64,000 nt of DNA from Styela clava (GCF_964204865.1 NC_135260.1:19034001-19098000), one strand, 5' to 3'; shown: positions 3,001-56,620, numbered from the stretch's first letter. Program-made: numbers and translations. Notes: generated by a model not told the origin, from the letters alone.

Positions 3001-5258
3001 TGGACTTGAATAGAATAAATAGCTACTTTACATATTCTTCATCACAAAGTTAAAATATGAGTTTATGAATAATTTTGTACCTACGTACAGTTATAGGTAC
3101 AAAATTAGGGTTTGTTATGTCTTATGTTACTTTCTTGTATTGTCATGAACAGCATGGTTAATGAGGGACCTGTTGTTAGTGAGTTTAATGCAGAAGAATA
3201 CCTGTTTGAATTCCATCACTGTCTACACACACATGGTTTTCGTAAACCATGTCCTGGATAAAAGCTAAAAGTTATTAGAAGTTCTGGATAAACAGTTATT
3301 TGGACATGAAGCTACTGAATTAGGAATGAACTGAAACTATTATCAATTAATTATTTAATTAATTACCCATAAATTAGTTTCGTTGTTCCACAAATACTGC
3401 AACCATTTGTTAATTAATTTATGCAAAATATTTAATAAAATATTGAATATATATTCTAGATTGTGTACGTTGCTCCAATGAAAGCTCTCGCTGCTGAAAT
3501 GACAAGAAACTTTGGAGGTCGGTTGGAATCACTTGGTGTCAAAGTTCGAGAGTTGACTGGTGATATGCAGCTGACAAAAAGTGAAATTATTGATACTCAG
3601 GTAACCTTTATTTTGTGTAATTTTCCTTTTTCAATATCCATCATTCTTTTTCCATGATTATTAATTGGTACATCCTTAGCTAAATTTCATATGTCATAAG
3701 TTTCATACACTTTCATACACAATAAATGTTCAGATCAATGCAACATGTTCTGAAATAAATATTTTCATTTCCACTTACTTACTACCTACAATCATAAACC
3801 AACTGCGAATATTTTAAATTTGAATTATGATGAATTACCAGACTAAACAACTAGCAAAGTTTATGTGTCTCAAGCATCATTTTTGATTGTGTAATGCTTT
3901 TTCAATCTGACTGTTTGTTCATGATTTTTGTTGGCAAGTTTCCTGAAAACGAAGACAACCCAGCAACTTACCGTATTTCCCAGCTAATAAGTCTACCTGG
4001 CAAATGAGACGAAGCCTATTTTCAGCATTAAAAAAAGAGGTTAGAAAAGTGACTTAATAGCCGGGAAATACAGTATTATCCCCTTTTTCTACATTATTTC
4101 TCGTTTCAAGAACCTGTATTTTTCAGTTTTTTTTGTGGTGACAATTTCTGTCACTCTTTCAAATCTTCGTGATGAAATATTTTTTTGATGCATTTATTCA
4201 ATATTTCTCAGTATTTATAATATATTGCATCATGGTCCAGTTACTATACCGTTTTTTAATGAAAATCAAATCAGATGCTCATAACAACACCCGAGAAGTG
4301 GGATGTGGTGACTCGTAAAGCAGTTGGTGACACAGCACTTGCTCAACTTGTTCGTCTTCTCATCATTGATGAAGTTCATCTACTGCATGATGAACGTGGA
4401 CCTGTGCTTGAAACATTGGTTGCCAGGACATTACGACAGGTAGAAATCCTTGGAAGATTGGTTTCATCTGGTGTATTATTGTGATATTGGATAACTCTAA
4501 AAATACCATGAAAATCATATAGGATTTGCTTTTGGAATGTTTGTCTGTGCCAAATTAGAACTAATCTAGTGTTTGACATCATTGTTACTGATTAATTGTC
4601 ATGTTTTGGAACAGAGGTCCTCAAATTTTTTTCCCCAGCGGACTGGTAACATCAAATGATGAGCAGAATGTCGCAGAAATTGCTCTTTCAGACTCATGTG
4701 GACTAAAGCATGTATTTGTAGATCCTTGGAATTTATAACTTACAAGGATCAACAAAAAGGATTTCGCGATAGATTTGGAACTGAAAAGTGTGAATAATCC
4801 CATCCAATACACCGCCGGGCAACCAATACAATGCTTGTCAAACACCCAAATTAATAATGGATGAGAAATGGCTAAATAAACTTTTCAGTAATCAAGCGGT
4901 TACGCTGGCAAAAAATAACAAAACAACAAAATTTTCGGGTATTGGTGAAGAGATTGTGCAGACCATCAGTTGGGAACCACTGTTTCAACACTCATTAAAT
5001 TTATAGCTTTTATTTGAAAGATATTTATGATAAGCAGGCTAAATTATTTGAACAAAGGGAAGAAGCAATGCATACTGAGAATTTCTCACAAGTCACAATT
5101 TTCCATAGCCTGCGTTGGCTCTCACTCTTTTTTCATTATTTTTTTGTTATTCTAACTTTGAAACAGGTTGAAACTCAACAGAGCATGATCAGAATTGTCG
5201 GACTCTCTGCTACACTGCCGAATTATCTTGATGTTGCAAGCTTCCTGAGAGTAAACCC
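64..5258 (+). CDS. ASCC3: ASCC3 exon block 1 (N-terminal region and RecA1 of the first cassette)
   Basis: 8 exons; Walker A APTGAGKT in 2654-2854, DEVH in 4275-4439, GLSATLPNY in 5167-5258 ending in a phase-2 donor (CC|gtgagt). Confidence 0.95.
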
Positions 5259-8200
5259 GTGAGTTGGTATCTTTTTATAGTTAATATAGGTTATTGATAA
5301 AGTATAAAATTTTATTTATTTTCGATTTTTACATATTATATTTTCCTAAAAAATCTGTGGGCACAGGTATATAGCTCATTTAGCGCAAACTGTTTTGATA
5401 TTGAAACTTGAGAGATTGAGAAGGAGCTTTTAAACTTAGTAGTGGCTGCTTGGCTATTGCTTTGATTGGGATGTAAATTGAAAAGGATATGTCTAACTGA
5501 AAAGCCATCATTTCCTCTGAAACATAGTAACTAAATATATCTAACCCTATCAGAATCTCATTTGGAGGTCACATGTGAAATGGGTAAGGTAGTGAACTGG
5601 AATGAGCAGCTCACTGGTTTCAAGTTTCGGTTAATGTCAATCCTTGTTTGCATCTTACATGTCAGACATCTCATAATATAATAACTTGAAGTTTGTGGTT
5701 CACAAGTATTTGGGGTGCATATATAAACAATATAACACAGGATGGTCAAACTGTGGGCCGCGGGCCGCAAGCGGCTTGCAGAACAATTTACAGTACCAAA
5801 CCATTGGCAGATATTGTATTTATTAGCAGAACAATTTAGATTTATTCCAACTGGGAATAGTTCTTTTCCTAATCCCGATGTCCGGATTGATGTCTGTCAC
5901 TTTGCGCCACGCGATCCATTTTTTTATATGAATTCGAGGTTCCAACTTAGACGGACTTGGTTGTTTTTTGACGACAGCACTATGCATGCTCACACTACAA
6001 GTAATGAAATTTTTCAAATATAACAATTCATCATACAAAGAGTGTAGAAAAAGTGTGTCCGAAGCAAACTGAGGGGAAATGTATTTCCTTACCCACACCA
6101 ACGGCAAACCACAGTGGCTGGTGTGCTTTTTAGTAATAACCGTCATGAATGAATATACGATAATTTTAGGCGACATTACAAAACCAAACACGAGAAAAGA
6201 GACCAAAAATACCACAATATTTCTCAGGAAGCAGTTTCAAAATAAATAAAGGCTTTATATAGTTATCTTGAAAAACTGATTAGAATGCTGAACTCTCATT
6301 CTTAAATATATTTAAAGTGAGTAAACTCGCGATGTTTTGATTACTTTTGGGTTTTTTCAGACTGCGGCCTGCGAGACTTCCCAAAAGTTTTTGCTGTCCT
6401 TAGACCTCGCAACCTTGGACCACCCTGAATAACATACGGTAATATAAATAATGAATAATAGCCCAAAAAAGGGAATAACACTCCATTGACATTCCATCTG
6501 CCGGTCCAGAAGCGATCTTTTAAAAAATACTGCTTGGAATTGTTGCTCACTGGATAGTTGACAATCTTTTACTCAGGAAATTTCATTGAATTTCCATTTT
6601 CCAAAGAACAGGCTTGTAAATCATTTTGTTTAACTGAGGGTCTTTGTCATCTTTGAGGTTGCTACATAAGTTTGAACCTTGATTAGGGTTTTATACTATA
6701 GTTCATTGAAACTGAAACTGAACTGTGTTGCTTTCTTGTTGCATCTTTCTCCCTATAATGCTTTGATTGCAAATCGTTAAACTTGTTGCATACATCAAAC
6801 AATAATATTCTTCGAATTTGCATTTTGGCTCATGTGAATAAAACCAAGTCGATATGTTTTCATCTCTACATCTTCCACTGAAAAAGTTTGTATTATTACC
6901 TGGAAATCTGATTGTTGCAGAATATTCCTGACTGCCTGCCTTTTCTGTTGTAGGGCTATGATGCATTTTTTAACAATAAAACAACTGCAATATTGCTTTA
7001 TTTGGACGCTTCCAGGTAATTCTCAATGACCCTTCTGGTTGTATTCATCACTTGGAATGTTTTTGTTCTTGTCGGCAAAAATATTTATTTTTCCAATATG
7101 AATATCAATATTACTTTACGCATATGAAATATCATGATTATGGTAATAAAAATGCAATTACAATTATTCAAATTATAGTTGAGTAATAGGATTTTTCTTC
7201 TAACTTGGTAGAGTCATAATTGTGAATTACCTTAATGTAATTTGATTATTTAAACTAGTGCTTCCTTACCAAACTGTGCACTGTGGACCACTCCAAATGT
7301 TGAAATATTATCCCACATCCCATTCTCTAAAACATTACGTAATATCCACAAGAAGGACTGGAAATATTTTTCAGATGTTGAATAAAATTACTTTATGAAG
7401 AATCTGATTATACAGAAAAATGATTTTTTTAGACCTTTTGGGCCTGAATATTCTTCTTGTGACACTTGCATGTTATCTGCTGTATTTTGAATCTAACTAA
7501 TCTTCTTTTCAAATAATAGCCACGCATTAGAACAATTCAGAATCCCATTTATTTTTATATAATTTGGGATCCTTTTTGCTATGAATGGATAAGAAATCTG
7601 TTTTTTAATAAAAATCCCACCTTTATACTTAATGTCACATTGAGTTGTTAATGATAAATTGAAGTGTATCATGGTGCGACTACTTACTGAATATTGGATT
7701 GAAACAACATTCTATACCTGTATATAGGCAAGCACATGCTGAGAAGTTCAATTCGTTTGACACCACGATTGGTTGGGTTTTGCGCTCTTGTATTAAAAAT
7801 TGACATTGACAAAAGTAAGACTACCAATCGGACATTCATTCTTTTTCTTGTCATAATTCAATGCTAATATAATGTTCAATTTTCTTTCCAGTATCAGCGG
7901 AACTTTGAATATTCGAGATAAATATATAAAAATTTTCAGCTCATCTCATTGATCATAAACAGGTTGCATATGAGATATTCAGCAGCTTGATGACTGAATA
8001 GATTCAATTATTTTTCCATATTTTTATATCTTCCGGGTGTTGTGATGGTACCTAATTTGAAAGCATATTTGCATTTCCTAGTACTGTAGTTAATAGGGTA
8101 TCTTCTTATTCATTATATACTAGAATACCCGAGATTCATAGTCAATTTATAATGATGATCTAACCATATGGATCTGATGTGATAAGCATAAGCAGAAACA

Positions 8201-11200
8201 TTTTTTTTTCAAAGTTGCTGGAAGTTGACTAGTTTTGGGTTATCATCACAAATATCGTTAATACTATCCCCTATCTATCAATCTTTGAATTGGGAATGAT
8301 TTATCCACCAATAAAATTTCCGCAAGATCAAAATTGAAATAAATAATGTTGTTCCTATTTGATATTATTGTCCAAATATATAACACTGAATAAATATATC
8401 ATATACAACTATTACTAAAGAGATTAAAATTATAGTTTCTTATCACATTAATATCTCATGAATATCTATCCATTGCAAGCGTTTTTTTTGTTTTTTTGCA
8501 ACTGGTAATCATTATTTTATTCATTGAATCGTTGAATCTTTCATCCCAAAACAAAGATTCCACTTGAGCTCCTAATCAATATTAGGGGAGTGATATTAAT
8601 CATACTTACTTTCCATCTGGAAAGTTTCTGGTCTGTTTAATTTAATCAGTTGTTCCCGTCAAGCGGTTATTAATAATTATAGAGGAAGTTATCATTTAGC
8701 TTTCTATTGTTACCTCAAAATATTATATATTGAATTAAATTTATCCCACATAACAGCACTATATCAATATTTTTTGTATTTGTTGTTTATTATCATTCAC
8801 ACAACAAAACTACGATATTTTTAAATGGGTTAAATAATTTAACATTGTACGAACTCAGAAACTTGACTTGTATTTCTTGTAATTTTATAAAACTTTTTGT
8901 TATCATAATACCAAAGTATAATCAAGCCTCATGCCTTGTCCCATTTCTTCAATTAATTTTGTTAATTCACATTCTTATTGGTATATCTTCTGTTTGAATT
9001 CATTCGTTACAATAAGAGAGGTAGCATTTCGAATTTTACAGAATTCTAGTGAGGTTAGACATAAATAGAACTTGATTGGAAAAAAATCATTCTGTTATTT
9101 GGGTAGCTTGCTTGTACTATACTTGGATAAACGATTACGGTAGCTTATAATGAGGGTATAGATTTTTTATAGGAATTTTGAAATAAAAAAATGTCTAGAT
9201 ACTGATATGTATCAGTTTTTGCTTTTGTTTGAGAAATCCTTCAGTCTTCAATACTTTATATTTTCTCCATTCAGTACATTTTAGTACATTGCATAGACAT
9301 CCAATGTTATATGTATAGTATATTTTATGTTCTCTTTTGATTGTTTTTGCTCGTTATTGAAGTCTCAATATTTCCTGTTTAATTCATTCATCTGTCTGAG
9401 TTTTTATGGATTGATCACGATTCTTGATAAATTCATCTTAGTGGTGGAAGCACAACATGATTTTTCCACCCCTGGTTATTGTCTCAAATATTTTCATATA
9501 CTTCACCATTTGGCAAATTTTCATACAGACTATCGTCAGTTCTTAAATTTTCGTAAGACAGAGCAGCAGTTGGTGTCACTTCATATTCTCCTTCAGCTGT
9601 TGTGGGATCATAATTTTCATAGGTGGCGGGTTGTTCCACATGTGTACTGTTTGCTGGTTCGACATGTACTTCAAAGCTTTCTTCATCTTTACTAGTTTTT
9701 GATTGTTTTCTTTTATTGTACCTATGTTGTAAAATATCAACCTAAATCAACCACTTCACACTTGCAGTAGAAAATTAATGTTGAAGCATAAATTTTATTG
9801 CACTTGCATGGTTATTAGGATGTTTACAAGCTATGGTTTTCGGAGCCATCCCATCAAACATAAATTTTAAAAGATGTTTAATTTTGAGATACACTTAGAA
9901 AATCTTTATGACCTACTGATGGCCGTGGCTGTGCGCTATTTTCTACTGAGTAACAGGCAAGATACTCATTTTAGTTTCATATTACTACCTTTGATGTTTA
10001 TTAGACAATTTATTCAGGCCACAAAAAGATTTCCAATTTTCTTGTTAATTTAAAAAAATGTTTTTCGTCATATTCTCTTCCGAATGTGCAATTTACATGT
10101 AGAAGTGTTTATAGGTAATACATTTGATAACCTCTCAATATGAATTACCTGAACAGTACATATGCAAAAATTGCTATCAACAGCAGTGTTGCAATAGCTA
10201 CTGGTACAATGATGACCACAAGATTCCCTCCTTGTGTACCCACAGTCGATGGTCCAGTTGTCATTGCTACAAAATAATATATCTTGATTAGCACTGATAT
10301 TTCTGTCTTGGCTCGGACAAATGAAAAAACATGCTTTCAGGTTTTTGATGTACCAATTCATTTTGGTATGGAGTAGTGTACTAAGTATTAATTGAACACT
10401 ATTTACTGAAATTTTCACTTGTGTTTTGTTAAATATGAAAACACTGCTCATAATACCAGATTTGTCGGCCAGATTTCTGCTTGTTGATGATACTTCTAAT
10501 GCAGTTGAGAGTGCATCAGCTGATTGAAGATTAATAATAAGTTATTATATGGAATTTTTATTTCATATCTACACTAAATCAATTATTGGTATATATACAA
10601 AGGCTGACAGAAACTAAAAGTTGCCAGAATTTTCATACAGACTGATTCAGATGAAATGGTAGAAGAAAATAGAACAGTACAAAAGTTTTAAAATAGTTTT
10701 TTCATTGATGCATCAGTGTGAAGGGAGAAGGATATCAAAGACTATTACAACATAAATAAATAATTCTGAAAAATAAAAAAGATAATATTGGGTTTGGATT
10801 AATATTATTTGATAGGAATTTCATGCTGATTTTGGGATCATTTCAGATTTTATTATTGCTGGAACAAAAATGTATCATTGAGGATAGTAGATTGAGTTCG
10901 TTATGGCAGAGGGAAAACTGAAATATGCATTATTCATTATGTTATTCATTCAATGCATGTACTTTTGCCCCAAACATTCTATGTTCAAACTAGGCTGTGG
11001 TGACCAGTTCTGTGAATTTGTTGTAAAACACATTCAAATACTTACCTGAGCAATTTATCACTAAATACTGGATTATAAAAGATTTTGAGAGTTCTGGGAA
11101 AATCAAATTGTATTCTATTTGAGTTGTCTTATTTTTCCATGAGTGAAAAGAAGTACATGTATGGTTGTCATATGGTATCTTTGTCTTGACATTGCTGTCG

Positions 11201-14200
11201 TTACAGACAGTTGAATTAGTTGCAAACATGAGACAATAATTTTTCTTGAAATCACATTCGTATTCCTCAGTTTCTAAATAGAATTCAATTTATTAAATAT
11301 TTTCAACAGCATTCTTCGAAACATATATTCAAAATACCTCAATTATTTCTGATGTATTTTGTGAAAATATGGGTTTATCAAGATTATAACTGTGTTAATT
11401 GTAATAATATTGGCTTGGTGATAAAAGCATCTTATGCAAAAAGTTGTTAGTGATCCTCTATCCTCCCTGTTTATTACTGTCTGGATAAACAAGGTTTTAT
11501 AAAATATTACTCCTCAATTTCTAACTTAGTCTTGAATAACAAAAAGTTTGTTGCACTTGGGTATCTGAACATCAAGTAAGGTTAGCTGAATCTTGAGCAA
11601 CAGATATAATTTCTATAAGGTTAGGTGATTAATGCTTTATTTATTTAGACTAACACTTTCTTCTATATTAATTATAAAGCACAATGGCACATCTAAGAAT
11701 CCCCCATTAGACTCTATTGTGCCGCACAGTATGGGTCCACAAGAACCATTAAGGATGGTCGAATTGCGTCTACATAAAAAAAATTTTCTGTCTATTCATT
11801 GTAATAGAGCTATTACAATGTTACTTTGAATCCATTGGATTTTAATCGTTTACAATTGCACGTCAGGGAAGTATTTAAAAATACCATCCTCCACATCTAA
11901 ATATAAAATTACCTGGAAATCTTAACTTCGCACTACATTCATTTAAATCCTTAAGAAATGAGGCATTGGTCAACACTAAAACGACTGCGATATCATTTAC
12001 TTGAACAGTTTCTGGTATTATCCATTGACAATCACAGTTGGATTGCGTACTTGAACCATGTGTAATATTTTTACTTTGATCACCAAGAATGATGTTTTTT
12101 AGGCAGTCTGTGCATTGAGCTGCAACGGCATCTTGAACCATTTTTTCTAAAAAAAAAAATTATTTTTACCTTATCTGTCTACATAATTTATATAAATATC
12201 CTCCACCACTGTATGTACTTATTCGATGCATACTGGAACATTTGGTCCAAATTTGAGTTAATGGTATTGTTTGAAATCTCTATTTTACTCCCAACATCGT
12301 CAGATAGATATCTGATTATGTTTTAATTGTTTGCATAGTTCTACAAAAATTGAAACAAATTGTATTTACGGATAAAAGAACTAATAATAAACTGAAATGA
12401 TCTATTTCTGTTGATCTATTAAGAACCTGAGAACATATGCTTACCAACAAGCAATAATAGCAAAATCAGCCTCCATATATTCGATCTATTTTTGATAGAA
12501 GCTGTAGTTTCATTCATTCTGAAAAATCAATACAATATTCAGAAAGTAAGTTATAATCATGGAATATACTTTACTTGAATTCAATAGGAAAGCAACGCTT
12601 AAATATATGAATGTGAAGAGCACGCATCGGTACTGATATGGTAAGGCCTTGAACTTCAGAGTACGGAACTTGCCGAAAAGATTGATAGACAAGCTTAGCG
12701 TAAAAGGGGTTTACTTCAATTAAAGAAAAATGCAGGAGGGATAACCAGTACCCTTTTTGCGGCTTCTGCCATCTTCATGTACTGATAATTTCAAATCGAT
12801 CGGTATATTTTTCCAGTAACAACCATAACTCCAACAACGATAACAATAACATGAACCGAATATTTTGGGAGATAGTCTCACATGGAGGGGTTGCTGGTCT
12901 TTATGCCATACGCCTAACCACTTTCAAACCTGGTAAAACTTACCTATTTTTATATTTGACGTGGACTGATATGTGATGAAAAAGTTTTTAATCATACACT
13001 TTTTTTCTAAGATTATCTAATCCTGTCTTTATGGTTTAACAAAAATTATTCGCTCTTGGTTTCTACTGTCTATCAGCCTGGTTTTAAATTAGATAACTTT
13101 TCCTTTATCATTCGAATGTGCATGTCTTGTGTAGCTGCACTACAAATTATACTTGCAGGCAAAGGCCCGATATGCGCCCGACAGAGTCCCCCTACCTGTC
13201 CCCCTAACTATACTAGTTAAAAGAGTGGGATTATTCCATGGCAAATCAAATTAGGAAGGTTTTGGTTTTTCTGTACTCAACTGTACCTCTAGGTATCTTT
13301 TTGTGCAGAGCCATTTATAGGGTATTAAACATTCAAAATGGTGATTAATAACATTTAATTTGTAAGGTTCTAAATTCCAGTTTGGATGGTTCCGGCATAC
13401 AAAATATGGTAACATAAACCATAAAGTCAATAACATAGGTTCAACAATTATTCATAGTTTCTTTTCTGGGTCATCTAATTTTTAAATGACATCTAAGTTA
13501 TGATACTCATTCGCTCATTTCTTTTTAGTACTAGAGCTAATATTTTTCCTGACTTTACCCTGACCTGCTTTAATACTTTCATCTAGAATGGAGTCATTTC
13601 CTCACATTAGCTGTGATGCCAATGCTGCTATTTTTGAATATTACTATACCAGTTGAAAAAGCTAGACAATGCAATGAATAAATTGCTTGACTCATATGAC
13701 GATGTCAAATATAAAATATCCTTCATACTGGGTATTTGCCATTAACGAAGTTCAGCCATTTATTTGATTGAGTTCGTCTCATTCTGCATTGAATTCAAAA
13801 TTTTCTATGCATTGCTGTTGCATTTGCCTGACTCATAAATTTTTTTGTGCTAAATGTATTTTATTAGTGATATGCATATTTATTATAAGTACAATAATAA
13901 TGATCAATCAAAACGAAGGAACAGACACATTGTTGCTTTTCATAATAACAAAATAGGATATAAGCAATCATCACGCAGTTCTTCGCTTATATATGACAAT
14001 ATTGGCATATGTCTTATTCAGTGTGATGTTTAATAAACATTTCTACTAAATATTAATTTCAGATATTAAAATTTAAATTGATATATATGTGGAAAATATT
14101 GAATACGTCTTCGTAGATTTATGGGTGTTAACTTTCCATTACGTGTCCCGTACTGGAGTAATTCACATGTTGAAATATTTTCTGAAGTTATAACTGCCCA

Positions 14201-17200
14201 GTATGAGTATTCTACCTTGCTTCCTGCTTCCGTGCCGTTTCACAAAAATTTTTATCAAGATTTGAATAGAATAATACCTGATTTGCATATATTGATACAA
14301 ATGATTGTTGATTATATTTATACTTAATAATATTATTTGATTCAAGTATCTTCGTTTGTTTTTACATCTATCATAAACAATGCAATTAAAAGAAAAAAGA
14401 ATAAGAATAAGATGAAATATTAACTATAAATTATGTCATTGATAATATTCAATAAAAAAGTGGGTTATATCATGTTTATTGACATATAGGAAGAATCAGA
14501 GTTTCCATGAAAATTCGAAACTTCGTAGCCCATTATAAAAGGTAATATTTTGGTTCGAAAAAAACTTTCATGATGGACCTTGAGGGAAGTTCCCATAGTT
14601 ATCTAAACGATAATTAACAATAGGGCGAAATAAACTTTGCGAACTTTGTTAATTTTGATGTGAACAACATTATAATCATCTATCAATTAGATTGAAAGAC
14701 CGCCCAAGAATGGTTCAGCAGATTTTTTTCTCTAAATCTGATAAATGTGATTAAATCTATGAAAATGCTAATAATCAATCATTACTATGATCACATTATT
14801 ATAAGTGAGTATAATAACTTTTATGTCAGATTCTAGCAATAGTAAATTGATCTTAATCAATTCTATTCTGTAGTTCATTTCACTTCTGTATGTGAATATT
14901 TATACCCTCTATATAATCAGCTCTTATTACACTTGTAGCTGTTGCATATAAACAATATTGTAATTTTTGATTTTCTTTGAAGCAATTCTTTTTTGAATAT
15001 GCTTGAACTTTGTTTTCTTGATTTAATCATTTTGACTTAATGGCGATCATCCCTTTTTTGCTACTGCAGCATAAATGTCTAGATCTCCTTTATTTTTTAA
15101 AATGATGCTGTCGTCGTATTCTGGTGAATGATCAACATTTTCGCCATGTCTTACTACATTGTCATCATACATCGGAGATGAAGCAACATTATCGTCATAT
15201 TGTGGTTCACCATTGTTATCAACTTCTACATCAACTCTTCTGTTCTGGGTTTCATGTCCTTCCATTGAAGTATAATCATCGGTTTCAACGTTTTTTCTTG
15301 TTGCTTTCCCGTATATTTCATCATCATCATCCACTTCTTCCACTTTTTCTTTATTGTTATTCTGATATGGTTCATACAAATCCATATTATCTGTATTTTT
15401 ATTCAACTGATTTTGTTGTATTTTGACTTGATTTTTTTTTGTTGTATTTCTGTTAAAATAAGTATTTGTGATAATATTTACAGATTATCTTATCTTATTG
15501 GGACTTTTTTAAATTTTATGAGATAAAATTTTTGTTTGTCAGAGACTAATTCAGATTGTAGTCATATAATTCGTTCATCTAGACTTTTGATCTGTCATAT
15601 TTTTCTCATACACATTTATATATTGAGATGAGAAGCCATGGTTTGCTAAATAGCTAAATTGTCCCATTTTTTAAACCTGCTCTTGTATATTTATAAGATG
15701 CCTTTTTTACTTTAATTCAAATTGACTTGCAGTTTCCAAAGTTTTCAAATACAAATGAATTCCAGAACAAAAAATTCAGAGGGTTTGAAGTGATAAAGAT
15801 GAGATTTTAATGCACTATTGACGATCAATAATAATATAATAATAACAGAAGTTAAGACTATGATATAATGTTACGGCCTATTGCGATAGCTCACCTTCTT
15901 AAGAACAATCCTATGGCCAGTGCCAGCAAAAACACTCCTCCGATTATAATTCCAATGATCATGATCATGTTTGTTGGGACACCGGTATTTCCTGACGAAG
16001 ATCCTGAATCATCAAAATTTGGTGGGTCTGTAACTAAAAAAAATTTAAATATATATTGTTGCTTCTTGATTACCGGTATATTTTGATATCATTGACGATG
16101 CATTATGCATCATGTTTGTAATTATTATTTCAAGAACCAAATGGTTCACTGCTGTGATTACACCTTGGGATATCCTGATCCTATGTTTATATATATATAT
16201 ATTTATTATTATAGTGAATCAGAACATATTTAGCTATTAAACAATTTTCTATATATCTGTGCTGAGCTAAAAGAATACCTGTATTTTTTGTAGTTGCTGC
16301 CTCAATTATTTTTTTTGTTTCAGCGGAAGTTGTCATCTGAGTTGTTGTTATATCACCTGTGATGATGCATTTCTTAGATTAAACAGAACTTACATAATTA
16401 ATCTTGTGACAATTGATTATACAATTAAGTAATCCTGCATTACCATATAACTTTTTGGAAATCATAAGTCTTCAGATTAATTTGACAAAGCGTTGTTACT
16501 TGTCAGGTTTAGGATCTCCTAAACCAATGATTCCCAAAGTGGGCGATATCGCCCCCCGGTGGGCGATAACGCTACAGAGGGGGCGAAAAAGTCGAAGGGG
16601 GCGATTTCTAAAAACCTGTTTTTGTTCGGCGCATCGTGCACTTGATTACTGTAATCTGCTTGCTTTCGTATGTTTGAATCACGTAGGCGATTATCACAAG
16701 CGAAAGGATTGCGGGACTCGTCTTCGCAGTAAGATACGGTCGTAAATAAACTGGAACTTCTGGGGAGACAAAGTGATCATTGACTTATTTTATTTATATT
16801 TAAATTTCCGAAAAACAACTAAAAACTAACGAATGTAATTCAAAAACGCCAAAATAAGGTAATTTTCACGACCACGTCTGAAAATCTGTCTGAGTGAGAA
16901 ATATGTCTGAGTGAGAAATATGAGCGGATGCAAAAGTGGGCATTGTTACGTTTATTTTTGCATCTTGCTGAATGGCCAATGTCACGACGTAAACAAGGAA
17001 GTCTATGCCCGGGGAAACATCCAAACGGCGGTTTTGGTGATGAATTAATTTTATTTACAATCTACGCTCGAGGAGTAAATTCATTTTTTTTATATAACAG
17101 AACTTATCGTGTGGCACGTTTAGACAAAATTTTATTATGGCCCTAAAATTTTATTAAACAGCTTCTCGTTTAACGAGCCTACAATCAATTATAATTAGAC

Positions 17201-20200
17201 AATAGGAAACACACGGAAAAGTTGATGCTGAGTGCAGGGGTTCAATAGCGCACTAAATATCAGAATATATTGCAATGCAATAAGGAAATAAAATTCATAT
17301 TCTATTCGAGGGATTCATCACTGCTCAATTTTTGTAAGAGTGTATCTTCTTAAAGAAAATCTTGATCAAAATTTGACAAACCATGCGAAAATATTCATTT
17401 CGATGTTTGGAAGTACATATGTGTGCAAACAAATATTTTCGAAAATGAACATTACAAAGAACAAGCTAGAACTAGGATTAGTGATGTCCATTTAGAAAAT
17501 CTTCTAATCTTGGCGTCGTAAAGCTATCAAGCGTGATGCAGCTACAAGACAGTGTCACATTAAATGTCATTGTAATAATTTTTTAATAAGACGACTGAGT
17601 TGAGTTCACAAATTGTCGCGTTTTTTTCCCGCTGTTCCGTTTTTAACTTTCAAAAAATATATGCGACCCGCAAAAGATTAGCAACCCTAAATGTAAAATA
17701 AGGTGAATTTAGGGAGTTAAATGCTATAAGGTAAGATTACACGGTGGTTTTTGCGGAGGTTGAACCCTAGATTCTTTTATTTCCGACCGCTAATATGATG
17801 AGGAGTTTTCAGCTGTGCTACTATTGCTATCAAAACAACGAAATCGTCTTTCCATCAGTAAACAGGGTCATTTTTGATATTATAAAAAACTCGCTGAAGA
17901 TCACCAAGCTCATTCATCTCATTAAAAAATACTATAAACTATGATTTGTCTCGTCATTTTTTTTGCAGTGCCGGGGGGCGATGAACTTGTATAAACTACT
18001 GTAGGGGGGCGATGATACAAAAAGTTTGGGAACCACTGTCCTAAACCACACAAAGAAATTCATTTCAATATTTTATTTCTTATATTATAAACAGCATATT
18101 TCAAATCCAGGCACATATGCATGTTTCCTCAAACTTCTTTTCTATGGACCTCAAAATGATTTTGCATTGCTTGAATTCTACAATGTCTCTCTGTTCTTAC
18201 ATTCTAAGCAGTGTCTTCAAATTATTTTCTAGTTGGATAAAAACAGCAAAATAAAGCATATGTGGTCACATTTTTAAAATAGATGAAATTAAAACATGCA
18301 TTTCAATCATATACTAAAAATTTCATTTTCTTATTTCATTGTCAAATTACTTGATATACATTCTACAGCCACAAGGAGTCAGCAAAAAAACGCTAAATGC
18401 TTTGCAGTATTGCTTTGTATGTGTCTCTTGAATTTTTAGAAGAATTTCATTCAGCAAACTTTATTATAAAACTTACTTGTTGTCGTTGGTGGTATACATG
18501 GTGTAACTAGATATTGTATAACAAATGATTTCGTGTATGGTGCGAAATTCTTTGCATTATACTTTATTTTGTATGGGGATCCTCCTGCTTTATTCCAATA
18601 TGTAGGTGAGCTGCAGTTTATTGTTTTGTTTCCAGCAAATATTTCTATTTGTTTGTTTTTGCATAGTGTGGATGATTCAGTCATAAATACCGAACACTGG
18701 TTTTCTACAAAGTCACATCTGTGCTTATCGCTACCTTTAAAACAAAATTCAACGAAAGGCCTTTAAACAATGAAAAACTAGTTTAGAAGAGAAATGAGGT
18801 ACTAATACATTATCTAGAATTTACTGTACAGTGGTTTTGTGTTTGAATCAGGAAAGCAACGGACAAAAATTGTGTGTGATATATAGAAACTGTTAAATCT
18901 GAAATTGTGTCTACTGGGGTTTTGTATGTGTAAAGTTTTCAGGTTTGAAATCATGTTTGGATGTACTGTTTGATATTGTAACTGGCTGAGAAATTTATTC
19001 ATACCAAATGAAACTAATTCATCATATTCAAATATAGCTTTGTTTTGACAAATTTTCTATTAATACCTGGTAACCTGATTTCTCCAGAGCAATCTATGCT
19101 TCCAGAACCTGTTGTCATTGGCAGGGAGATATTCTGAAGTAATAGTACAATTGCGTTGTTGTTATCTGTGGCAAATTTTACTGGTATTGTCCACTCGCAG
19201 TTGCAACTGTGTCCATTGCTCGGACCGTAGCTGATATTTCTGCTTTCTTTTCCAAGAATAATTTTTGGACAATCTGAACAAAACGCCGCTTTGCTCATAC
19301 TGAATTGATTTCCTGGAAAAAGATTTTTAATGTTCATTGTAAATTATCTGGATGGTAATTTTAATGCCGCGTCACTATGGTGAGGGAAAGTTGTGTTGTA
19401 ATTTGAGACCATAAAATATTCATAATCAGTTTGTATCTTGGACGATGGTCAAATGTAGGTACAATATAACACGGTAGCTTCATAAAAACCAACGAATTAT
19501 TGCATGCATAAAGATTCCTATGAAATTAATAAGCATTTTTGGGACCGTGCTTATGCTTATTAGTGTTGATGTTTTTTCTTGCTGAATTGGAATAGTGCTG
19601 GAATCGAATTACGGTAGTTATTGATCCCAATTGTCATTTAAATGAGTCTTTTTATGTACCTCGTCCTCACCAAAAACATTTGTCCATGCTTAGTTTAATT
19701 ACTTTTATGCTGTCAATTTGTATTTTATTTGTAAAATTATGAAGATAATATAAATATGATTATAGACATACCTGCTAAATAAATAATCAAGATGGGGATC
19801 TTGCAATAAATGGTGTCAGAAAACATCTTGCATCCACTTCTTCTGTAAATTGCATAAACGTGACTACATATCATAAAGAGCTTGCATTTGAAATTTTATT
19901 GAATAAATGAAAATTCAGTTTCACAAGGATGGAAAGACTTGTTTCTTAAATTACCTAAGGCAAACTTGAGTCTCGTGGAGATATTTTCACACAAATAATT
20001 AACAAGGGATTGATAGATTGAGGTGATACCTAAAAAACTTTATTAGCCTATGGGATTTTTTTGACTATTTTTCGAATTCAAACCGTTAGTTTATCTTCAG
20101 TTTAATGACTTAGTTTTAAACTTTCATACTGTCTATTGCTACTCTATGAATGCATCAATAATATTAAATATCAGCATAAAATTTGCTTTTGTATCTTGGA

Positions 20201-23200
20201 TTATTTTCTAAGGTAAAAGATTGTATTGTGCTACACTATAATGTAAGTTTGGCATACTATTTATTTATTTTCATTTATTTTTCGCTTATGCTATGCAGAA
20301 ATAAGTGGTTTGATTCCTGTTGAGAATATTTATGTGTACACGACCACTGAATACCTGTTGTAGTGTTTCGTCGTTTTGTTACCTATTTCTTGAGTATATT
20401 TATACATCTTAAATATTCAACCAGTTATTTTCACACACAACCTGAACAATCTATATGGCCTACAAGCTATGAAGCAGTTGCAATATTTGTATAAATTCAA
20501 CTTGTCAATTCAGCCATGTTTTTTTTATCTGACAATACTAGTAGAATGTAACAAATTGTTGAGAAAATTTTGCTCCAGCTTGCCGCTCCTGATGATTTCC
20601 TTGTCTGTCTCACTTCTTTTGAATGTTCCAGATTATGTTATGCAATTTTTTTTAGATTTGTATATTATATTCTTCTATGGTTTGTGTATTTTTCTTATTC
20701 ACAAAGCCACCTACTCAATGTTTAAGGAAGTTGGTAAAGCGTTGAAACATTGTAATTTGTGTGAATATATATGAAATGCAGTACACACAAAAAACATTAC
20801 TAATTTGTATTTAATAGGAATTCAAATATTCTTGATAGATATGAGTTACGAAATTGATTCTTTGCTAATAAATAGCTTTTGTGGATCAAGTCAGTTGATT
20901 GGCATCTTCACTGCAATTTTTTGTTGAACCCCATTGTATTTGTGTAGCTTATTTTCATCATGCTACGCAGGCTAGGTATGAAGCAGTTCTCTACCATTTG
21001 GCCCATTTTCAGTGCCAAAAGAAATCTTAGGCCGACAAAACCAATGATAAAATGTTACCCAAAATAAATTTTTGTTATTAATGAAAACTGAAAAAAAGTT
21101 GCCAAACTAAGGGGTCGGCTTATACATGATAACTCTGATCGCACTCGAACAAGTGACATTATGTTAACTTAATTCCAACAGCTACAACTCAATTCTCATG
21201 GTAAGAGCTTACAATTTGTAGGGTCGGCTTATATGCAAATTTTTAGTAACGTTTTATGGCTGTTTTTGTGGGGTCAGCTTATATGTGAGGATATACAGAA
21301 AATATATATTTTACTATGATGTATTTATTAATGTTTGTGTTAAGTTTATACTGTGAGAAATCAATAAATTCTGTCATCATGTAGTTGACAAATAATAAGG
21401 AAGTGCCACAGTTATATAAAGTATATTCAGTTGTCAATGGCTTGATTATATTTATTTTCATTATGAAACAAAAGAGCAAAATACTCAATCAATTGTCCTC
21501 AACAGCGTTATGCTCATAGATTTTAAAATACATAAACATTTTTTCGCATACTTGTTGCATACTATGACTAATGATGTTGCCATAATATGTGGGCTTTTAT
21601 GTTTATAATATCTCTGCATGTTGTTCTATTGTTTTGCCTTGTTTTGTCAATTATATTGCTCATATCTTGACACATATGTAAAAATTTTTTGTTTTAAAAT
21701 TCCATGTTAGTACAATGTCAACATCTCTCACATTTGGTTGAAAATTACGCTGCAGTCACGTTTTAAAGTTTTTAGTACCGTAAATCACGTTTTTGTAATT
21801 TCCAGATATGGTATTAATGAGTGCTCTAAACCCTTACATAGTAGGAATCGAATACTCCTTGCAAAACATCATATGTATGGCTCTTAAGGATGTGTTTTCG
21901 ACAACGCCTGAAGCACACCCCTATATATTTTTTTACACATTCATCACCATAAGTTACAATTTATATGCACGATACTTAAAATCTAGATGCATCTTGAGTT
22001 GACTCTAAATTATCGGTGCTCCAGAAGTGTGTGTACCAATATGGAGGTAACTAATTTTGTTTGCCTACTGCACATCAAGTTGTGTGAAGGGACTGAAACC
22101 TATGCACAGGGGGGTATATTCACTTGTCTAACACAGACAGTCCCCGAACTCGTAATAGAACTGAAATAAGGAATATCGAAATAAAATTATGGCCCAACCC
22201 CAGTAGTGGGATTCAGCCGGTCCGTCCGGAACCGTCTCACCGAATTTTATGAGATCAGCGAACCGGTTGGCATTACTGAAAAAAACATGACTTCTTGTAA
22301 CAGAAACGGCTGAAAAATATGACATTTGTGTGATGGAAATTTGAGTCCCATCACTGCCTAACCCTAACCTGGTACACACTCTTCGGGAGTACCCAATTAT
22401 CTATATTTCTGATCACCTATTTGCATAGAACTCCCGTGAACCTGAAGGTTAGGTTACTTTACTTGAAGTACAATTTCATGTGCTGTGCTTTCAGTTCTGG
22501 AGTGAATACAGTACGAGGTGGTTAATTATGATATTTCATACATCACCAAATACAAATATACTAGTAAATTTATATATTCTAATGTAGTAAAATGGGTAGG
22601 TTATGATAAATCATAATCATAATAAGCATAGTCAGTTTCCTTGTATCAGTGTCTATTCCCCTGGAGATCTATTAAGAGTAAATTATATCAATTTAAACAT
22701 TGTTCTATAATAGTGTTTGTATTTTGCGCAATTCTTGATACCTATTTATGACTGCGTTTTGACGATAATCCTATATCATATCTTAATTAGTTGGTTACAA
22801 CCATATACAAGTCTGTGTTATCTCTGAGATTTTCATACTGTCCATTGTCCGTCAAATTTTCATATTGAACGTCATTTCTTAGGTTTTCATATTGCATCAC
22901 AGATCTTGGAACTTCATATTCAACTTCATCATTTGTAGGTGTGTAGTTTTCATAACAACCCTGATCTTTGTCCAAAGTTTCAGAGCCATGATGTGAAGGG
23001 TCTTGATGTTGTACATTTGTTAGCTCTAATTTACTTAAATTTTCATCCTTTCTTCTGCATCTGTAAATTGTAAATTTCGTTGTACTATCAACTGTTTTTG
23101 GCTTGATCTAGTCAGGTATATCGTTAGATTCATTGAATAAACAGTTATAATCAACCAAGTAAGTCCTGTCTTAATACCAAATAAGTGGCACCAAAATTAC

Positions 23201-26200
23201 ATAATTGCTTGCCATCTCTTTCTGAACATTTAATATGATCACAATTCACTATCAGCTTTCGAGTCTTTTTAAATCTGACTTACCTTCGTATGATGCAACC
23301 GATTAGAAGACAGAGAAGGATTAGCCCAAGCACAGATGGAGCTATTACTATAAACAGCTGAATTTCAAAAGATTGTGAGACATGAATAGCCATTGTTGCA
23401 TTTGTATAGTTCAGTATCTCTGCAAATGAATTCATATTACAACTTTAAATATTGTCATCTGCCACAGCCTGTATTGGTTGATACTAATATATGAAATAAT
23501 AAACGAACAGTATTAAATCTGTTTGCCAGTACAATCAATTATCTAATATAGCCGATTTGTGTAGGAAAAAAACAATTCAATACTCATAACCTGTTCTTAT
23601 TACAATTCAAGTTTCAGAGATTTCTTCCTTAAACCCTACTTAAACCCTTTTACATCGCTGAATAGATGAGATAGGTTGCAGCTGTTAGATAAAAAAAATT
23701 GTAGATAGAGATGATCAAAATTTCCCAATCACCAGGGTTATACCACAAAGCTAAACAGCATTGTTTTAATAGCTGGGACTTACCATTGGTGGTTAATGTG
23801 ATGCTATTTTCAATGTTTTCAGTCAGTGTATTATTAATTTCTAAAGCTGAATTGGTTTTTGTCTGTTCTTCTGTATGTTGCTTAGTTGTCTCAAAAAAAT
23901 TCTCAGGAGAAATACCAATATAGCTCCCTAATTAAATAGAAAAAACTAATGAGTTTTTATAAAATTTAATCCGAGCTTTCTAAACCCCCCCCTAAATCCC
24001 ATCTTGGAAACATTAAGTAATTTTTATTATTTAAATTTATTAGACTGCAAGCGAGATGTTGAATAACATAACTTAATTTTGTAACTCCATATTCGCTTAA
24101 TTTGAATAGTGTTATTGTTTGAAGATTTTAGTCCCTTCGAAAATTGAGATTGTGATTTTAGAAACAACTGAACAAATCATGTTTTTTATGAAAATCTCAT
24201 GAAAATTTGGTCGAAAAATAAAGCATTAATTTGATCACAAAGTAAGTTTTGCTATCATTTCTGTTTGATGGTTGCTCTTAGATTTTAGGTGAAATTCTAG
24301 TACAGCAAACTGTTTTGTCATTACATTTCTAGTAGTCATAAGCTTTATCTGACTAACCTGTACTTGTTATTTTGACATCATTTGTAGTTTGTGTTTGTTT
24401 GCAGTAGAAAGGAATATAATTAATCTTGAATCTCCCTTCTCTCTTATTTTCTTGGGTGAATCTGATTTCTGGATTTTCTGTCCACTGCATGATAGATTTT
24501 GATCTACATTCCTGATCCACTTGCAGTTCATTTGCATTACACGCTGTGAATTTCGTCACATAAATAATGCAATCTCCTGAAGTATATTTGCATGAACTCT
24601 TCAGTCCTGTAAAATACATAAACATGAATTGACAAAATGTAATGTGTGAGGTAGAATCCTGCCACACGCAACAAGACTAAATTTTATATAATGTAGGTGT
24701 ATACTGCGATTTATACAATTTGATATATTAGGTGGTCTCGCAAAGAGGTTCAAAACTCTTGCCCCCATATTTTTGTTGTAAAAATTTTTGTTTTGTTCCA
24801 ATCAGAACAAGTCTTTATATAAACTCCACTTAGATATAATTATAAGGAGTATATGCTTCATTTCAGCTTTGCCTTTTTTGTTTGATGTTCTATGTCCTAC
24901 CATGATACGGTAATGGATATGAACCATTCACTGAGGTCCACACAAGGTCTGTAATTTTCAATGCCAGCCCAATTACCGGTAATCTAAATTGCCAATTACA
25001 TAGTTACCTGGTAGTGTCAAGTTAGCTTTACAACCATAGATATTTTCCATTTTGGCATAGTCAAAAGTGAAAGCAACTGCATAATTGTCAGAAACAATAT
25101 CAGATGAAATGTTCCAAGTACATGTATAATCTTCTTCTGGAGCAAGAAGAGTTTTTCTACTGTATATGTTATTTAGTAATATATTCTCACATTTTTCTCC
25201 ATATATAGTTTTGAACAGAATTGCTGTAGAAAAACATAAAATCTAATATTCAATCTTATTGTGTTAGGTAACATCAATGCTAATTCACTCTGTATACTAT
25301 CAATGAATTCAAATACATTTCATTTACAAGTAGAACTTATTCAATATTTGAACAAAAATGCAGATAAAACAGACATAAATAAATAATTTTAACTCACCTA
25401 TTGAAAGTAAAGTATTGATAAAGCTACATGGTGACATTTTGTTTTTGCTGTGCTACTGACAAAATGATGGTATAATGGTTGATGACATGCAACCGTATAT
25501 TTTATGGTAGAATTTAGTCCCATTTTCCTTAAATGACGCATTGTTTATTTACTTATTAAGAAGGACAAAAAAAGTGGTGTGATTATTTATTTTACGTAAA
25601 TAGAAATCGACTCGCACCTGCTTAAACTTATGCAAATTACAATTCATCATAACTTCCGCGTCGTTTCAGAGAAATTAAGTGGAAAGTTTTAAGACAATGA
25701 GTAATTATGAAACAGGAATCGCTCATAAATGTATATTGGTAGATAATATATCAAAACATCATACCTCCTAATGATATTTATTTTTACAAATTCTGAATAT
25801 AACAGTATATTTAATCCAGTCACAATTTAACACAAATCATTAATATAAAGTATAACTGTTTATGCTCTAGTTTTCTTCAAATTTAGGACAGGAAAGGCAA
25901 AGAGGGGCAAAGGGAATTATTATTTATTTCTCAAATTTTTGGTGTTTGATAGTCATATTATATAGAATCTTAATATCAATATATATTATATATTCATTGA
26001 ATCTTATATTAGACATTGAGCATCGACATTGAATTAATTTAAATATTTTATTATCCATAAACGTACAAAATAAGCAAAGATTACATAGATTTAAAAAATG
26101 GTAGAGACAGCATAAGTTTAAGCGTGTTGATCTTATGTTATTCCATCCATGTTGGCATCTTCAATTGTTCTTATCATTATGTGTAGAAAATTGAAGTGTG

Positions 26201-54520: not shown

Positions 54521-54845
54521 GTTCCGCCTACGTCGCGGTGTTTGGGACCGACAATTTGGTAACAACTCGAAAACGTAGGTTGCGAAATATTTGGCGAGGT
54601 AAAAATGAATTGACCGTTAGATTATAACTTTTGATTTCATTACGCAAATTGAATACCAAAAGCCGGTATTTGATGTCAAAATCGAGGTATGATTATAGCA
54701 TATATGGTTGTTAATGAATGTTATGTTACCGTATATTGCTATTTCGTAGATTGTCTCTGACTTGCAAGTTACCCGTTCACCCTTCAGCTTCAACGCCCAC
54801 GTGAATGAAGATGCGTTAAAAATCTCTATATGTTTTTATTCGTAA

Positions 54846-55270
54846 ATTTCCACAACACACAGAATATAAATCTTATAACATTTATCCAGACTAGCTTAGA
54901 ATGGTTTACATCGTCTTCTCTCTCCCTATCGAAAGATATCGGAGTCGTATTTATACGTTGAGCATAAACCTTATTAAATACTGTAAACGTGAGCTCGTGA
55001 TTCACGTTATAAACAGAAATTCCTATTATCTCAACAAGGGTAATTAGGTACATCGTACGGATGGGAACTTAGATATAATTATTTCAATCAGTGCCAAAGG
55101 TCTTGAGAATATAGATTTTAATTTGATAATGACTGGATGGAACCTGTTATGTTCTTAAACCTGGTGTAATTTGATTCCTACGAAAGTCTTTGTTCGAATT
55201 TTGGGAAAAATTAACTGTGTTTTCATATTTTAACATGAAATGGGGTACATTTGGGGGTTAGTTGCTATAT
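54846..55270 (+). repeat. 425-bp direct repeat, copy 1
   Basis: Essentially identical to 56621-57045; the only mismatches seen are near the left edge. Confidence 0.95.
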
Positions 55271-56620
55271 TATCTCCCCATCTTACTAACTGGAAGTTTA
55301 AAGATTTGGCACCCTCTAATAAAGTGGAAATATATCGAAAAATACAATACACAATGCTAAAATTAATGATATAGGTCAAAAAAATATTTACATGTATATG
55401 ATCTACAATGAGACACGACATTGAAATAAAGAAGAGTTTATAGAAAGAGTAAAGATTGTAAAGTAGAATTACAGAAGGATGGCGTATTTTTATTTAAAAA
55501 ATTTTGGTTTGGACGGTTAAAACATATTTTCAATTTAATGTATTTCGCTAAGTTAAAATACTTATACTCGCTTTATCGCATTGTTACGATTTTGTAGACC
55601 TAGTTGGTCAATATATGCTTGTCCCATGTCGGGAAGAAAAAACGCATTTTTAAGTTTATGCCATCTCAGGGCTTTTTTGAAAAAATAACGCTTTTGGATA
55701 CAATTTTTGTTTAATGAGCTTATTATTTCACCGTTCTATATGACGGCTTTGTAAATAATTTAAAGTATGACTCGCTCGAATCTACTTTTAGAAAGCATTT
55801 TAATTCCAACGAAATCTATTTAATCGAAAATGAATGTTAACCACAAATATTTAATAATATAAATCTCTAAAAGGTATTTGAAATTAAAATATTCAAAGTT
55901 GTTACCATTAATTAATTTATAAAAATTAAAAGTCGAATGAAACGCCATGTATATATAAGAAGAAAAAGAAGTACTTTACCTTAGTATTAGTGGAAGAATG
56001 AAAAATGTCTGTCTCAATGAGGAGAAAAACCTGCAAATCATGAAACAAATTGTAGAATTACATGCTCCTGATCTGTATATCCAATAGGTAAGCGCGACAA
56101 TTTCTCTATTGTTCGGAATAGAGCGCGTAATTTACCGTAAAACAGTCCATATAGTTCATTGTTTTCAACAGTTCGTTTTTGATTAGGTTTTTCACCTCGA
56201 ACATATATCATGTTCTAAAAGAGTTCATTTCGATCGATGTTCAATACAGTCCATATTCATGATTTTAACGTTTCCAGAGTCCGTTACCATAGTTCAACTG
56301 TTTTCAATTGAGATTATTGTCTTTTCATAATGTTTTTGATTATTTCGGCTTGTCAGCAATTTGCTACTTCAATCGTTGTTCCAGGCAATTTGAATGTCCT
56401 CGACGTTCGTAAGTTGGTCGAATTTGATTTTCGCACGTTTTGTATAGATGGTTTCTCGGCAATTGTTGGAAGCTTTCGCTTGGTCTGTTTTTTGGTTGAT
56501 TCCTTCCAATTGTTGCTTGTTGTCCGTTGATCTGGTCCGTTTCAGAAGGTTAATTCAAGTCGGCTTTGTCACCATTTATAGCATAAATAATGGGTAAATT
56601 CTGTTTGATTTTATTCTCAG

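Follow-up and report, generated by a model that had tools for sequence, protein, structure and literature searches.

Three intact genes, here called A, B and C, and the relic of a fourth (D) lie on the minus strand, antisense within one intron of the ASCC3 gene of the ascidian Styela clava, and belong to a family of about 45 or more copies whose products are predicted to be membrane receptors with tyrosine-rich cytoplasmic tails. The window, that is, the whole stretch of 64,000 nucleotides that was analysed (C14:19,034,001-19,098,000), comes from a chromosome-scale contig of the 377-Mb genome. The family is of the paired tyrosine-motif receptor cluster type on a predicted CUB-like fold; its genes are modelled in RefSeq and are otherwise undescribed, as far as the literature searches show. 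The explanation that we favour, with modest confidence and by analogy with better-known systems, is that it would serve as a paired activating and inhibitory recognition system.

The gene cluster and its host intron

Two plus-strand exons flank the cluster, and both score higher for ASCC3 than for Brr2 and SLH1. Since they match consecutive residues of human ASCC3, a single intron of ~21.4 kb separates them, and the ASCC3 exon matches together with the spliced mapping described below bear out the placement of a minus-strand cluster within one intron that had been proposed in the original prediction. The minus-strand stop-to-stop frames between 6.7 and 25.4 kb contain three paralogous exon sets, each with a pair of Cys-rich ectodomain exons, one hydrophobic exon, and a terminal exon rich in tyrosine; besides genes A, B, and C and relic D, no further fragments of the family were found in the 64-kb window.

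~5146-5259 (approximate bounds), plus strand: host ASCC3 exon immediately upstream of the intron (human ASCC3, 8alz_B, residues 232-269, E 3e-13)
~26624-26785 (approximate bounds), plus strand: host ASCC3 exon immediately downstream of the intron (8alz_B residues 270-323, E 8e-20)

Gene models were obtained by mapping RefSeq proteins onto the window as spliced exact matches, the full-length sequences used being the database entries. All junctions of the three genes are GT-AG. The genes had been announced as hidden; in fact NCBI RefSeq already models all three, naming each product "uncharacterized protein" of Styela clava. Gene A (LOC144429976, XP_077974359.1, handled here as P0036) encodes 317 residues in six coding exons at 9484-12517, with intron phases 1,1,1,1,2. 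Gene B (LOC144429975, XP_077974358.1, P0035) encodes 415 residues at 15047-20407. Gene C (LOC144429880) has two isoforms: X1 (P0078), with 352 residues in six coding exons at 22787-25437 and phases 1,1,1,1,2, and X2 (XP_077974228.1, P0043), with 304 residues, which skips the stalk exon. Thus the predicted layout of six coding exons with phases 1,1,1,1,2 holds for A and C; the RefSeq model of B has an extra 5' exon, seven coding exons, and phases 2,1,1,1,1,2. All of the features below are on the minus strand.

Gene A
12445..12517, minus strand: exon 1, start codon and signal peptide (exact mapping of P0036, GT donor, phase 1)
11913..12146, minus strand: exon 2, N-terminal half of the predicted CUB-like ectodomain, CxC...CxCxW...AVVL...C...RFP (spliced mapping; ~40 paralogous genome exons)
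11046..11273, minus strand: exon 3, C-terminal half of the predicted CUB-like ectodomain (spliced mapping; ectodomain of the structural model at a per-residue confidence, pLDDT, of ~90)
10457..10519, minus strand: exon 4, short Ser/Thr-rich stalk (spliced mapping)
10149..10266, minus strand: exon 5, transmembrane helix, phase 2 donor (spliced mapping; helix 216-248 in the model)
9484..9721, minus strand: exon 6, cytoplasmic tail with 7 Tyr, then the stop codon (spliced mapping, motif scan)

Gene B
20355..20407, minus strand: additional 5' coding exon, in the RefSeq model only (spliced mapping)
19772..19842, minus strand: signal-peptide exon (spliced mapping)
19067..19312, minus strand: ectodomain exon, N-terminal half (genome search, spliced mapping)
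18477..18734, minus strand: ectodomain exon, C-terminal half (genome search, spliced mapping)
16279..16356, minus strand: stalk exon (spliced mapping)
15895..16033, minus strand: transmembrane exon (spliced mapping)
15047..15449, minus strand: tail exon with 8 Tyr (spliced mapping, motif scan)

Gene C
25398..25437, minus strand: exon 1, start codon (ending at 25437) and signal peptide (spliced mapping)
25008..25223, minus strand: ectodomain exon, N-terminal half, highly divergent (alignment, spliced mapping)
24358..24606, minus strand: ectodomain exon, C-terminal half (alignment, spliced mapping)
23784..23927, minus strand: stalk exon, a cassette present in X1 (P0078) and skipped in X2 (P0043) (two RefSeq isoforms, spliced mapping)
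23284..23419, minus strand: transmembrane exon (spliced mapping)
22787..23060, minus strand: tail exon (spliced mapping, motif scan)

Relic D
6724..6988, minus strand: end of ectodomain exon 1, a short in-frame intron, and start of ectodomain exon 2 (paralog match)

The pseudogene that had been proposed is confirmed as this relic, in which recognisable sequence is limited to ~28 residues at the end of ectodomain exon 1 and ~40 at the start of exon 2; a search for a transmembrane or tail exon of D found none. Next to this decayed copy, A, B, and C are genuine genes, each of them intact and separately spliced. Mapping of the RefSeq proteins also agrees with the architecture that had been read from the DNA: each product is a predicted type I membrane glycoprotein that consists of a signal peptide, a Cys-rich domain of ~145 residues, a Ser/Thr-rich stalk, one transmembrane helix, and a tyrosine-rich tail, with N-glycosylation sequons in the ectodomain only.

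The statement that these proteins form no recognised family stands as well. All are annotated as uncharacterized, no published description of the family was found in the literature on Styela ITAM/ITIM proteins (immunoreceptor tyrosine-based activation and inhibition motifs) or on tunicate proteins with CUB and ITIM, and no literature mention was found of six older LOC identifiers. The sole Pfam match above the cut-off is that of gene C to TMEM154 (PF15102; 32.0 versus 30.3 bits), over residues 156-269 of P0043, that is, the stalk, the transmembrane helix, and the start of the tail. Scores below the cut-off were obtained for the foreign relative P0042 described below (29.9 bits) and for gene A, P0004, P0041, and P0049 (18-20 bits). 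TMEM154 is not known to have a CUB-like domain. The match, confined to the stalk, transmembrane, and juxtamembrane region, may reflect either true remote homology to this vertebrate single-pass protein or similar composition.

Family size and array layout

A genome search with the two ectodomain exons of gene A as queries returned 41 and 44 matches, or roughly 45 exon pairs. About 40 of these pairs are arranged in tandem at C14:5.53-5.79 Mb, on the plus strand, with a spacing of ~5 kb, on the same chromosome as the intron cluster and 13 Mb away from it. Smaller groups consist of 4-5 matches at C14 6.16-6.19 Mb and one on C13, and five more distant relatives with the same architecture (P0041, P0044, P0048, P0049, and P0056) are found on other chromosomes. 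The check for paralogs across the genome that had been suggested was thus productive, and the family extends well beyond the intron cluster: most of its ~45 copies belong to the tandem array, and A, B, and C are outliers, old and diverged. The map of this array was assembled from 38 islands of ~3-10 kb and RefSeq proteins and is incomplete, with tails derived from DNA for some genes only. Several array exons contain in-frame stops, which suggests that there are pseudogenes within the array.

A transposon origin was considered and rejected, as no evidence for it was seen.

Two single copies may be mentioned separately. In the array copy near C14:5763082, an in-frame stop interrupts the conserved CDW motif of the first ectodomain exon. 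In the C13 paralog (C13:18933746-18934417), the two ectodomain exons are separated by a short intron that keeps the reading frame and has no stop codon; the older RefSeq model (P0002) translates this intron into 28 additional residues, and the newer one (P0001) removes it.

Ectodomain scaffold and predicted fold

The ectodomains had been described as strongly diverged on a retained Cys/Trp scaffold, and this is what the alignment shows: a Trp, five Cys, and a Phe occur in every one of 12 members whose identity to gene C is as low as 15-28%. The domain is ~145 residues long and has 8-10 Cys, including the five invariant ones, and an extra short helix. No other ectodomain domain, including immunoglobulin (Ig) or sushi, was found by Pfam in single exons or full-length members.

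The evidence for the fold comes from structural models. In the AlphaFold2 model of gene A, built from a 32-sequence alignment, the ectodomain has a pLDDT of ~90. When this model was compared with 48,161 PDB representative chains, the top 20 were all CUB domains, with Z of 8.2-10.2 (Gpr126, C1s, TSG-6, neuropilin, spermadhesin, MASP, Kremen, cubilin, enteropeptidase, and PCPE); non-CUB chains followed from Z 7.7. The root-mean-square deviation for the best-fitting CUB chains was 2.7-3.1 A over 99-107 residues. An independent model of the array member P0004, with an ectodomain pLDDT of ~75, gave the same CUB ranking at Z 7.0-8.8. Foldseek assigned its CUB matches probabilities of 0.95-1.0, but with weak E values (2.6e-3 or weaker), and the named clusters in an ESM Atlas feature search were CUB, CRF-BP_N, and AGRB_N, all with scores at the level of leads. 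From these models we conclude that the ectodomain probably adopts a CUB-type beta-sandwich fold that has diverged past sequence recognition. The epithet "CUB-like" is accordingly retained for the predicted fold, where AlphaFold models, PDB chains, and Foldseek agree, and it is not upheld by sequence profiles.

Tails and tyrosine motifs

The tail of gene A contains four YEN motifs and one ITAM of canonical spacing (YENL-x6-YENL). That of gene C contains YENY, YEVP, three YENL, and a terminal LYMVV, and its only ITAM-like arrangement is the variant YENL-x6-YMVV. Motif counts are above those of all 20,000 composition-preserving shuffles; four YEN[LIVY] motifs, for example, as present in the A tail and in the C tail, were reached by none of them, and the ITAM pattern of gene A by 87 of 20,000. 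Gene B has three Y[DE]D[NS] motifs and a C-terminal DIYAAV. Homology of gene B to the class II members described next was considered and rejected: its tail aligns with neither class II nor class I tails.

In the array, alignable ectodomains are joined to two main classes of tails, which are unrelated to each other. Class I tails contain TYENYTPTSDESGYEVP and one to three GYEVP repeats and end in QQYE[IV][IV]..YQY[DE]N, thus offering YxN, YxxP, and YEEI-like sites. Class II tails contain AIYG, EIYD, CLYAVV, and a C-terminal SSIYAVV, of which SIYAVV is a canonical ITIM ([SIVL]xYxx[IVL]) conserved among class II members. The classes occupy separate blocks, class II at 5.540-5.590 Mb and class I at 5.608-5.787 Mb; their ectodomains align over the whole domain and fall into the same poorly resolved clade of the ectodomain tree. 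The array hence has the make-up of a paired-receptor cluster, with related ectodomains on two types of tail, for which the motifs would predict opposite signalling. Tail motifs are conserved across paralogs. The ITAM/ITIM-like character that had been ascribed to the tails was found as an ITAM in gene A and as an ITIM in class II of the array, and in gene B as neither.

Evolution and variation

Rates of nonsynonymous (dN) and synonymous (dS) substitution and their ratio (omega) were estimated by a crude pairwise Nei-Gojobori procedure that ignores gene conversion. For ectodomain pairs of 19 array genes, dN was 0.156, dS 0.253, and omega 0.59 (interquartile range 0.50-0.73), with 8% of the pairs above 1; omega was 0.60 for array transmembrane exons and 0.44 for five class I tails (10 pairs). 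These values describe fast, relaxed evolution over the entire gene. Ectodomain-specific positive selection was considered and rejected, the crude pairwise ratios carrying no such signal. Variability is concentrated in the ectodomain loops 31-37, 50-56, 85-93, 105-113, and 158-167, whereas conservation is strong in strand 71-81 and segment 124-147; entropy is 0.82 in loops versus 0.52 in secondary-structure elements (p = 0.02). In comparisons of genes A and B with the array, synonymous sites are saturated, and the intron cluster is therefore old.

Variation at single loci was approached by comparing proteins that share a LOC identifier between the older and the newer RefSeq annotation release, taken as two assemblies. 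At four array or C13 loci the two proteins differ by 11-19%, a comparison that in a tandem array may mix alleles with paralogs. In the one pair that is full-length and ungapped, nearly all differences are in the first ~190 residues, and in the other three they are concentrated N-terminally. The proteins of three dispersed relatives differ by 0.3-2.7% between releases. The divergence at these loci is a sign of either extreme allelic polymorphism or different gene content of the haplotypes. Of the rapidly diverging tandem receptors of the original prediction, fast evolution and ectodomain differences at the same locus were thus recovered; diversifying selection was not, with omega of ~0.6 in the ectodomain and a similar value in the transmembrane exon.

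Relatives outside Styela clava

A 26-sequence profile of the family was scored against 1.84 billion representative proteins and gave 40 matches at E <= 0.001, the sources of 10 of which were checked. The checked matches that cover the ectodomain are S. clava proteins and P0042, the product of a 1,420-nt Logan contig. P0042 is absent from this genome, where its best match is the tail exon of gene C at 41% identity; since it is not encoded in the S. clava genome, it comes from another species, and since it is uninterrupted, it is probably a transcript. In the tree it clusters with gene C (97/87 support), both being long branches. The two share a string of tail motifs, and their ectodomains are just ~28% identical. 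A homology search with P0042 as the query returned P0042 itself alone, and one with the divergent alignment A2 returned three proteins only. The family is accordingly older than S. clava, judging from the sequence of this relative, yet undetectable by sequence in other annotated proteomes.

Comparison with known systems

The closest known system is in the same ascidian family, Styelidae. The FcoR genes of Botryllus schlosseri comprise 53 loci for type I membrane proteins, whose tails have ITIM, hemITAM (a half-ITAM), or a bare Yxx[ILV] core motif, and their alternative splicing mainly affects exons between the ectodomain and the transmembrane segment (PMC12065747). The family described here resembles FcoR and fester as a large multigene family of type I membrane proteins, and the cassette stalk exon of gene C parallels FcoR splicing. 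It differs in the ectodomain, where FcoR proteins have IgV, sushi, and C2 Ig domains and the Styela proteins one predicted CUB-like domain with no Ig or sushi match. Moreover, Styela clava is solitary, whereas Botryllus is colonial. For ITAM signalling among solitary stolidobranchs there is a precedent in the haemocyte membrane glycoprotein of Halocynthia roretzi, with two ITAMs and a role in aggregation and phagocytosis (Takahashi et al. 1997, as cited in PMC5465252).

With Hydractinia Alr and the vertebrate KIR, LILR, Ly49, and CEACAM clusters, the family shares tandem organisation with pseudogenes, similar ectodomains on activating-type or ITIM tails, and fast ectodomain divergence. The ectodomains of those systems belong to the Ig superfamily or to the C-type lectins and not to a CUB-like type. 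The putative activating members here have docking tyrosines of their own, and not a charged transmembrane residue that pairs with an adaptor.

Other likenesses concern only one end of the molecule. The CUB superfamily (PF00431: C1r/C1s, MASP, neuropilin, spermadhesin, TSG-6, Gpr126) is approached by the predicted fold, and we take the "CxW" of the family, followed by a hydrophobic strand and Cys, to resemble the N-terminal half of a CUB domain; the family differs in having no hidden Markov model match, a longer domain, more Cys, and the extra helix. CDCP1 and DCBLD1/2 combine one or more CUB-type ectodomains, a single transmembrane segment, and a tail in which several tyrosines, some of them within YxxP repeats, can dock SH2 domains. 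The one to three YEVP repeats of class I tails are reminiscent of these; there is no detectable sequence relation, and CDCP1 and the DCBLD proteins are encoded by single or paired genes with added domains and form no large tandem paired family. Several YxN (Grb2-type) tail sites are shared with LAT, NTAL, and GAPT, YENL presumably being one of the Grb2 sites of LAT, and the GAPT model of Pfam matches the tail of gene A weakly and below the cut-off (E 0.04). Those proteins are adaptors with almost no ectodomain, and the likeness is at the level of motifs.

Proposed function and alternative explanations

The best explanation of these data, held with modest confidence, is an intact family of tyrosine-tail receptors with a predicted CUB fold, acting as a paired activating and inhibitory recognition system, for which an immune or self/non-self use seems likeliest. 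That use would be the weakest step of the explanation, being suggested by analogy with KIR/LILR, Alr, and FcoR. The CUB-like domain would bind an extracellular ligand through its variable loops, upon which tail tyrosines would be phosphorylated and SH2-domain proteins recruited. Tails of A, C, and array class I, with repeated YEN, YEVP, and YE[IV][IV] and, in A, the ITAM, may dock SH2 proteins of the Grb2, Crk, and Src/Syk types and activate the cell, in a manner that recalls a LAT-type scaffold forming part of the receptor itself, whereas class II tails (SIYAVV, LYAVV) may dock SHP- or Csk-type proteins and inhibit it; these partners are assigned to the motifs from general knowledge of SH2 specificities. 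Gene B would represent a third, acidic type of tail, of which only the terminal motif is class-II-like. According to a review (PMC12065747), Src, Syk, SHP, Grb2, and Crk are present in ascidians, and LAT and SLP-76 are missing.

Several observations weigh against this explanation. As for the fold, Pfam CUB (PF00431) matched neither single exons at E <= 10 nor ten full-length members at E <= 1, the family profile gave only transmembrane-segment noise against PDB sequences, and the structural Z of 8-10 exceeds the background quoted for the tool by a moderate margin only. As for the tails, a canonical ITAM (Yxx[LI]-x6-8-Yxx[LI]) is present in gene A only and in neither gene B nor any scanned array tail; gene B has no canonical ITIM either, as DIYAAV fails the consensus at position -2; the ITIM-consensus matches in A and C overlap YENL repeats and are a side effect of them; and tail tyrosines are lacking altogether in the divergent relative P0056. 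The omega values show no ectodomain-specific signal of positive selection, and possible mixing with paralogs bears on the differences between releases. Finally, tyrosine-docking tails occur also on non-immune adhesion and growth receptors.

A further reading goes beyond this one and is offered tentatively, again by analogy. S. clava might have a large, highly polymorphic system of CUB-fold paired receptors, an independent invention of KIR- or FcoR-like recognition in which the variable loops would read self and non-self. Class I tails would then be LAT-like Grb2/Crk scaffolds compensating for the reported absence of LAT and SLP-76, and the intron genes would be ancient, conserved, and perhaps monomorphic, gene C having an ortholog in another species.

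It is considerably less probable, though still to be taken seriously, that the proteins are non-immune adhesion receptors or co-receptors, whose CUB fold binds matrix, tunic, or growth-factor ligands and whose tail is a general phosphotyrosine dock of the CDCP1, DCBLD2, or neuropilin type, the expansion reflecting specialisation to tissues or environments. The CUB fold is typical of matrix, complement, and growth-factor co-receptors, docking tails with YxxP and YxN are known on DCBLD2 and CDCP1, dN/dS is below 1, and the strong conservation of residues 124-147 across the array suggests a common ligand or partner over diversified specificity. However, a tandem array of ~40 copies in which near-identical ectodomains are joined to tails of the activating type and of the ITIM type is the signature of paired immune-type receptors, ectodomains of the same locus diverge strongly between the two assemblies, and sequence similarity to the CDCP1 or DCBLD families was not found.

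Tandem arrays, fast ectodomains, and strong divergence between individuals would fit fertilisation or self-incompatibility loci as well, and a polymorphic family expressed in the germ line or follicle cells could discriminate self from non-self between sperm and egg of this hermaphrodite; such a role in gamete recognition has an ascidian precedent in the polymorphic receptor of Ciona follicle cells that is cited in PMC5465252. We consider it improbable. ITIM- or ITAM-type SH2-docking tails are not known from ascidian self-sterility proteins.

Least probable of all is that A, B, and C are decaying by-products, barely expressed or untranslated duplicates that landed in the intron while only the big array functions: their neighbour D is clearly a relic, they are highly diverged from the array with saturated dS, and they appear only in the newer RefSeq annotation (LOC1444... 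identifiers), but open frames over 6-7 exons, canonical splice sites, the scaffold Cys and Trp, and dense tail motifs have been kept despite that synonymous divergence, which requires purifying selection over a long time and makes this reading unlikely, and the closest relative of gene C is a probable transcript contig from another species.

If the family is indeed a paired recognition system, it would be the second large one in styelids with the same signalling logic and another fold, so that the logic of the tails would be conserved and the ectodomain interchangeable, and in solitary ascidians its members would be candidates for the receptors behind haemocyte recognition or the rejection of grafts. 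Such systems matter for the question of how germline-encoded innate recognition in tunicates, to which vertebrates have their closest living kin, relates to vertebrate ITAM/ITIM signalling; the Ig-domain receptors of Botryllus with ITIM or hemITAM have only recently been tied to histocompatibility. About 50 "uncharacterized" RefSeq proteins could gain a family definition, namely a CUB-like domain, a stalk, a transmembrane helix, and one of two main tail classes.

Other features of the window

An interspersed repeat of ~100 bp occurs at 819-918, 22100-22200, and 26281-26370, with 85-87% identity between copies, one of them lying between genes B and C and another just 5' of the downstream ASCC3 exon. 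The translations have a common "TDSP..R/ELK" string, and the repeat is probably a short mobile element. A segment of ~280 bp is duplicated at 54820-55100 and 56596-56875, ~1.8 kb apart, with 97% identity, and each duplicate contains the start of the same 66-residue open reading frame on the minus strand. Two open frames, 28896-29604 (minus strand) in another ASCC3 intron and 16413-18060 in the long intron of gene B, resemble transposase or zinc-finger relics (e.g. "GQWFPNF...") when judged by eye. Near the end of the window, the open reading frame 61471-61761 (minus strand), which starts with "GLFGCFSN...CCAFPL" and by eye resembles Cys-rich proteins of the PLAC8/cornifelin type, may be a separate minus-strand gene.

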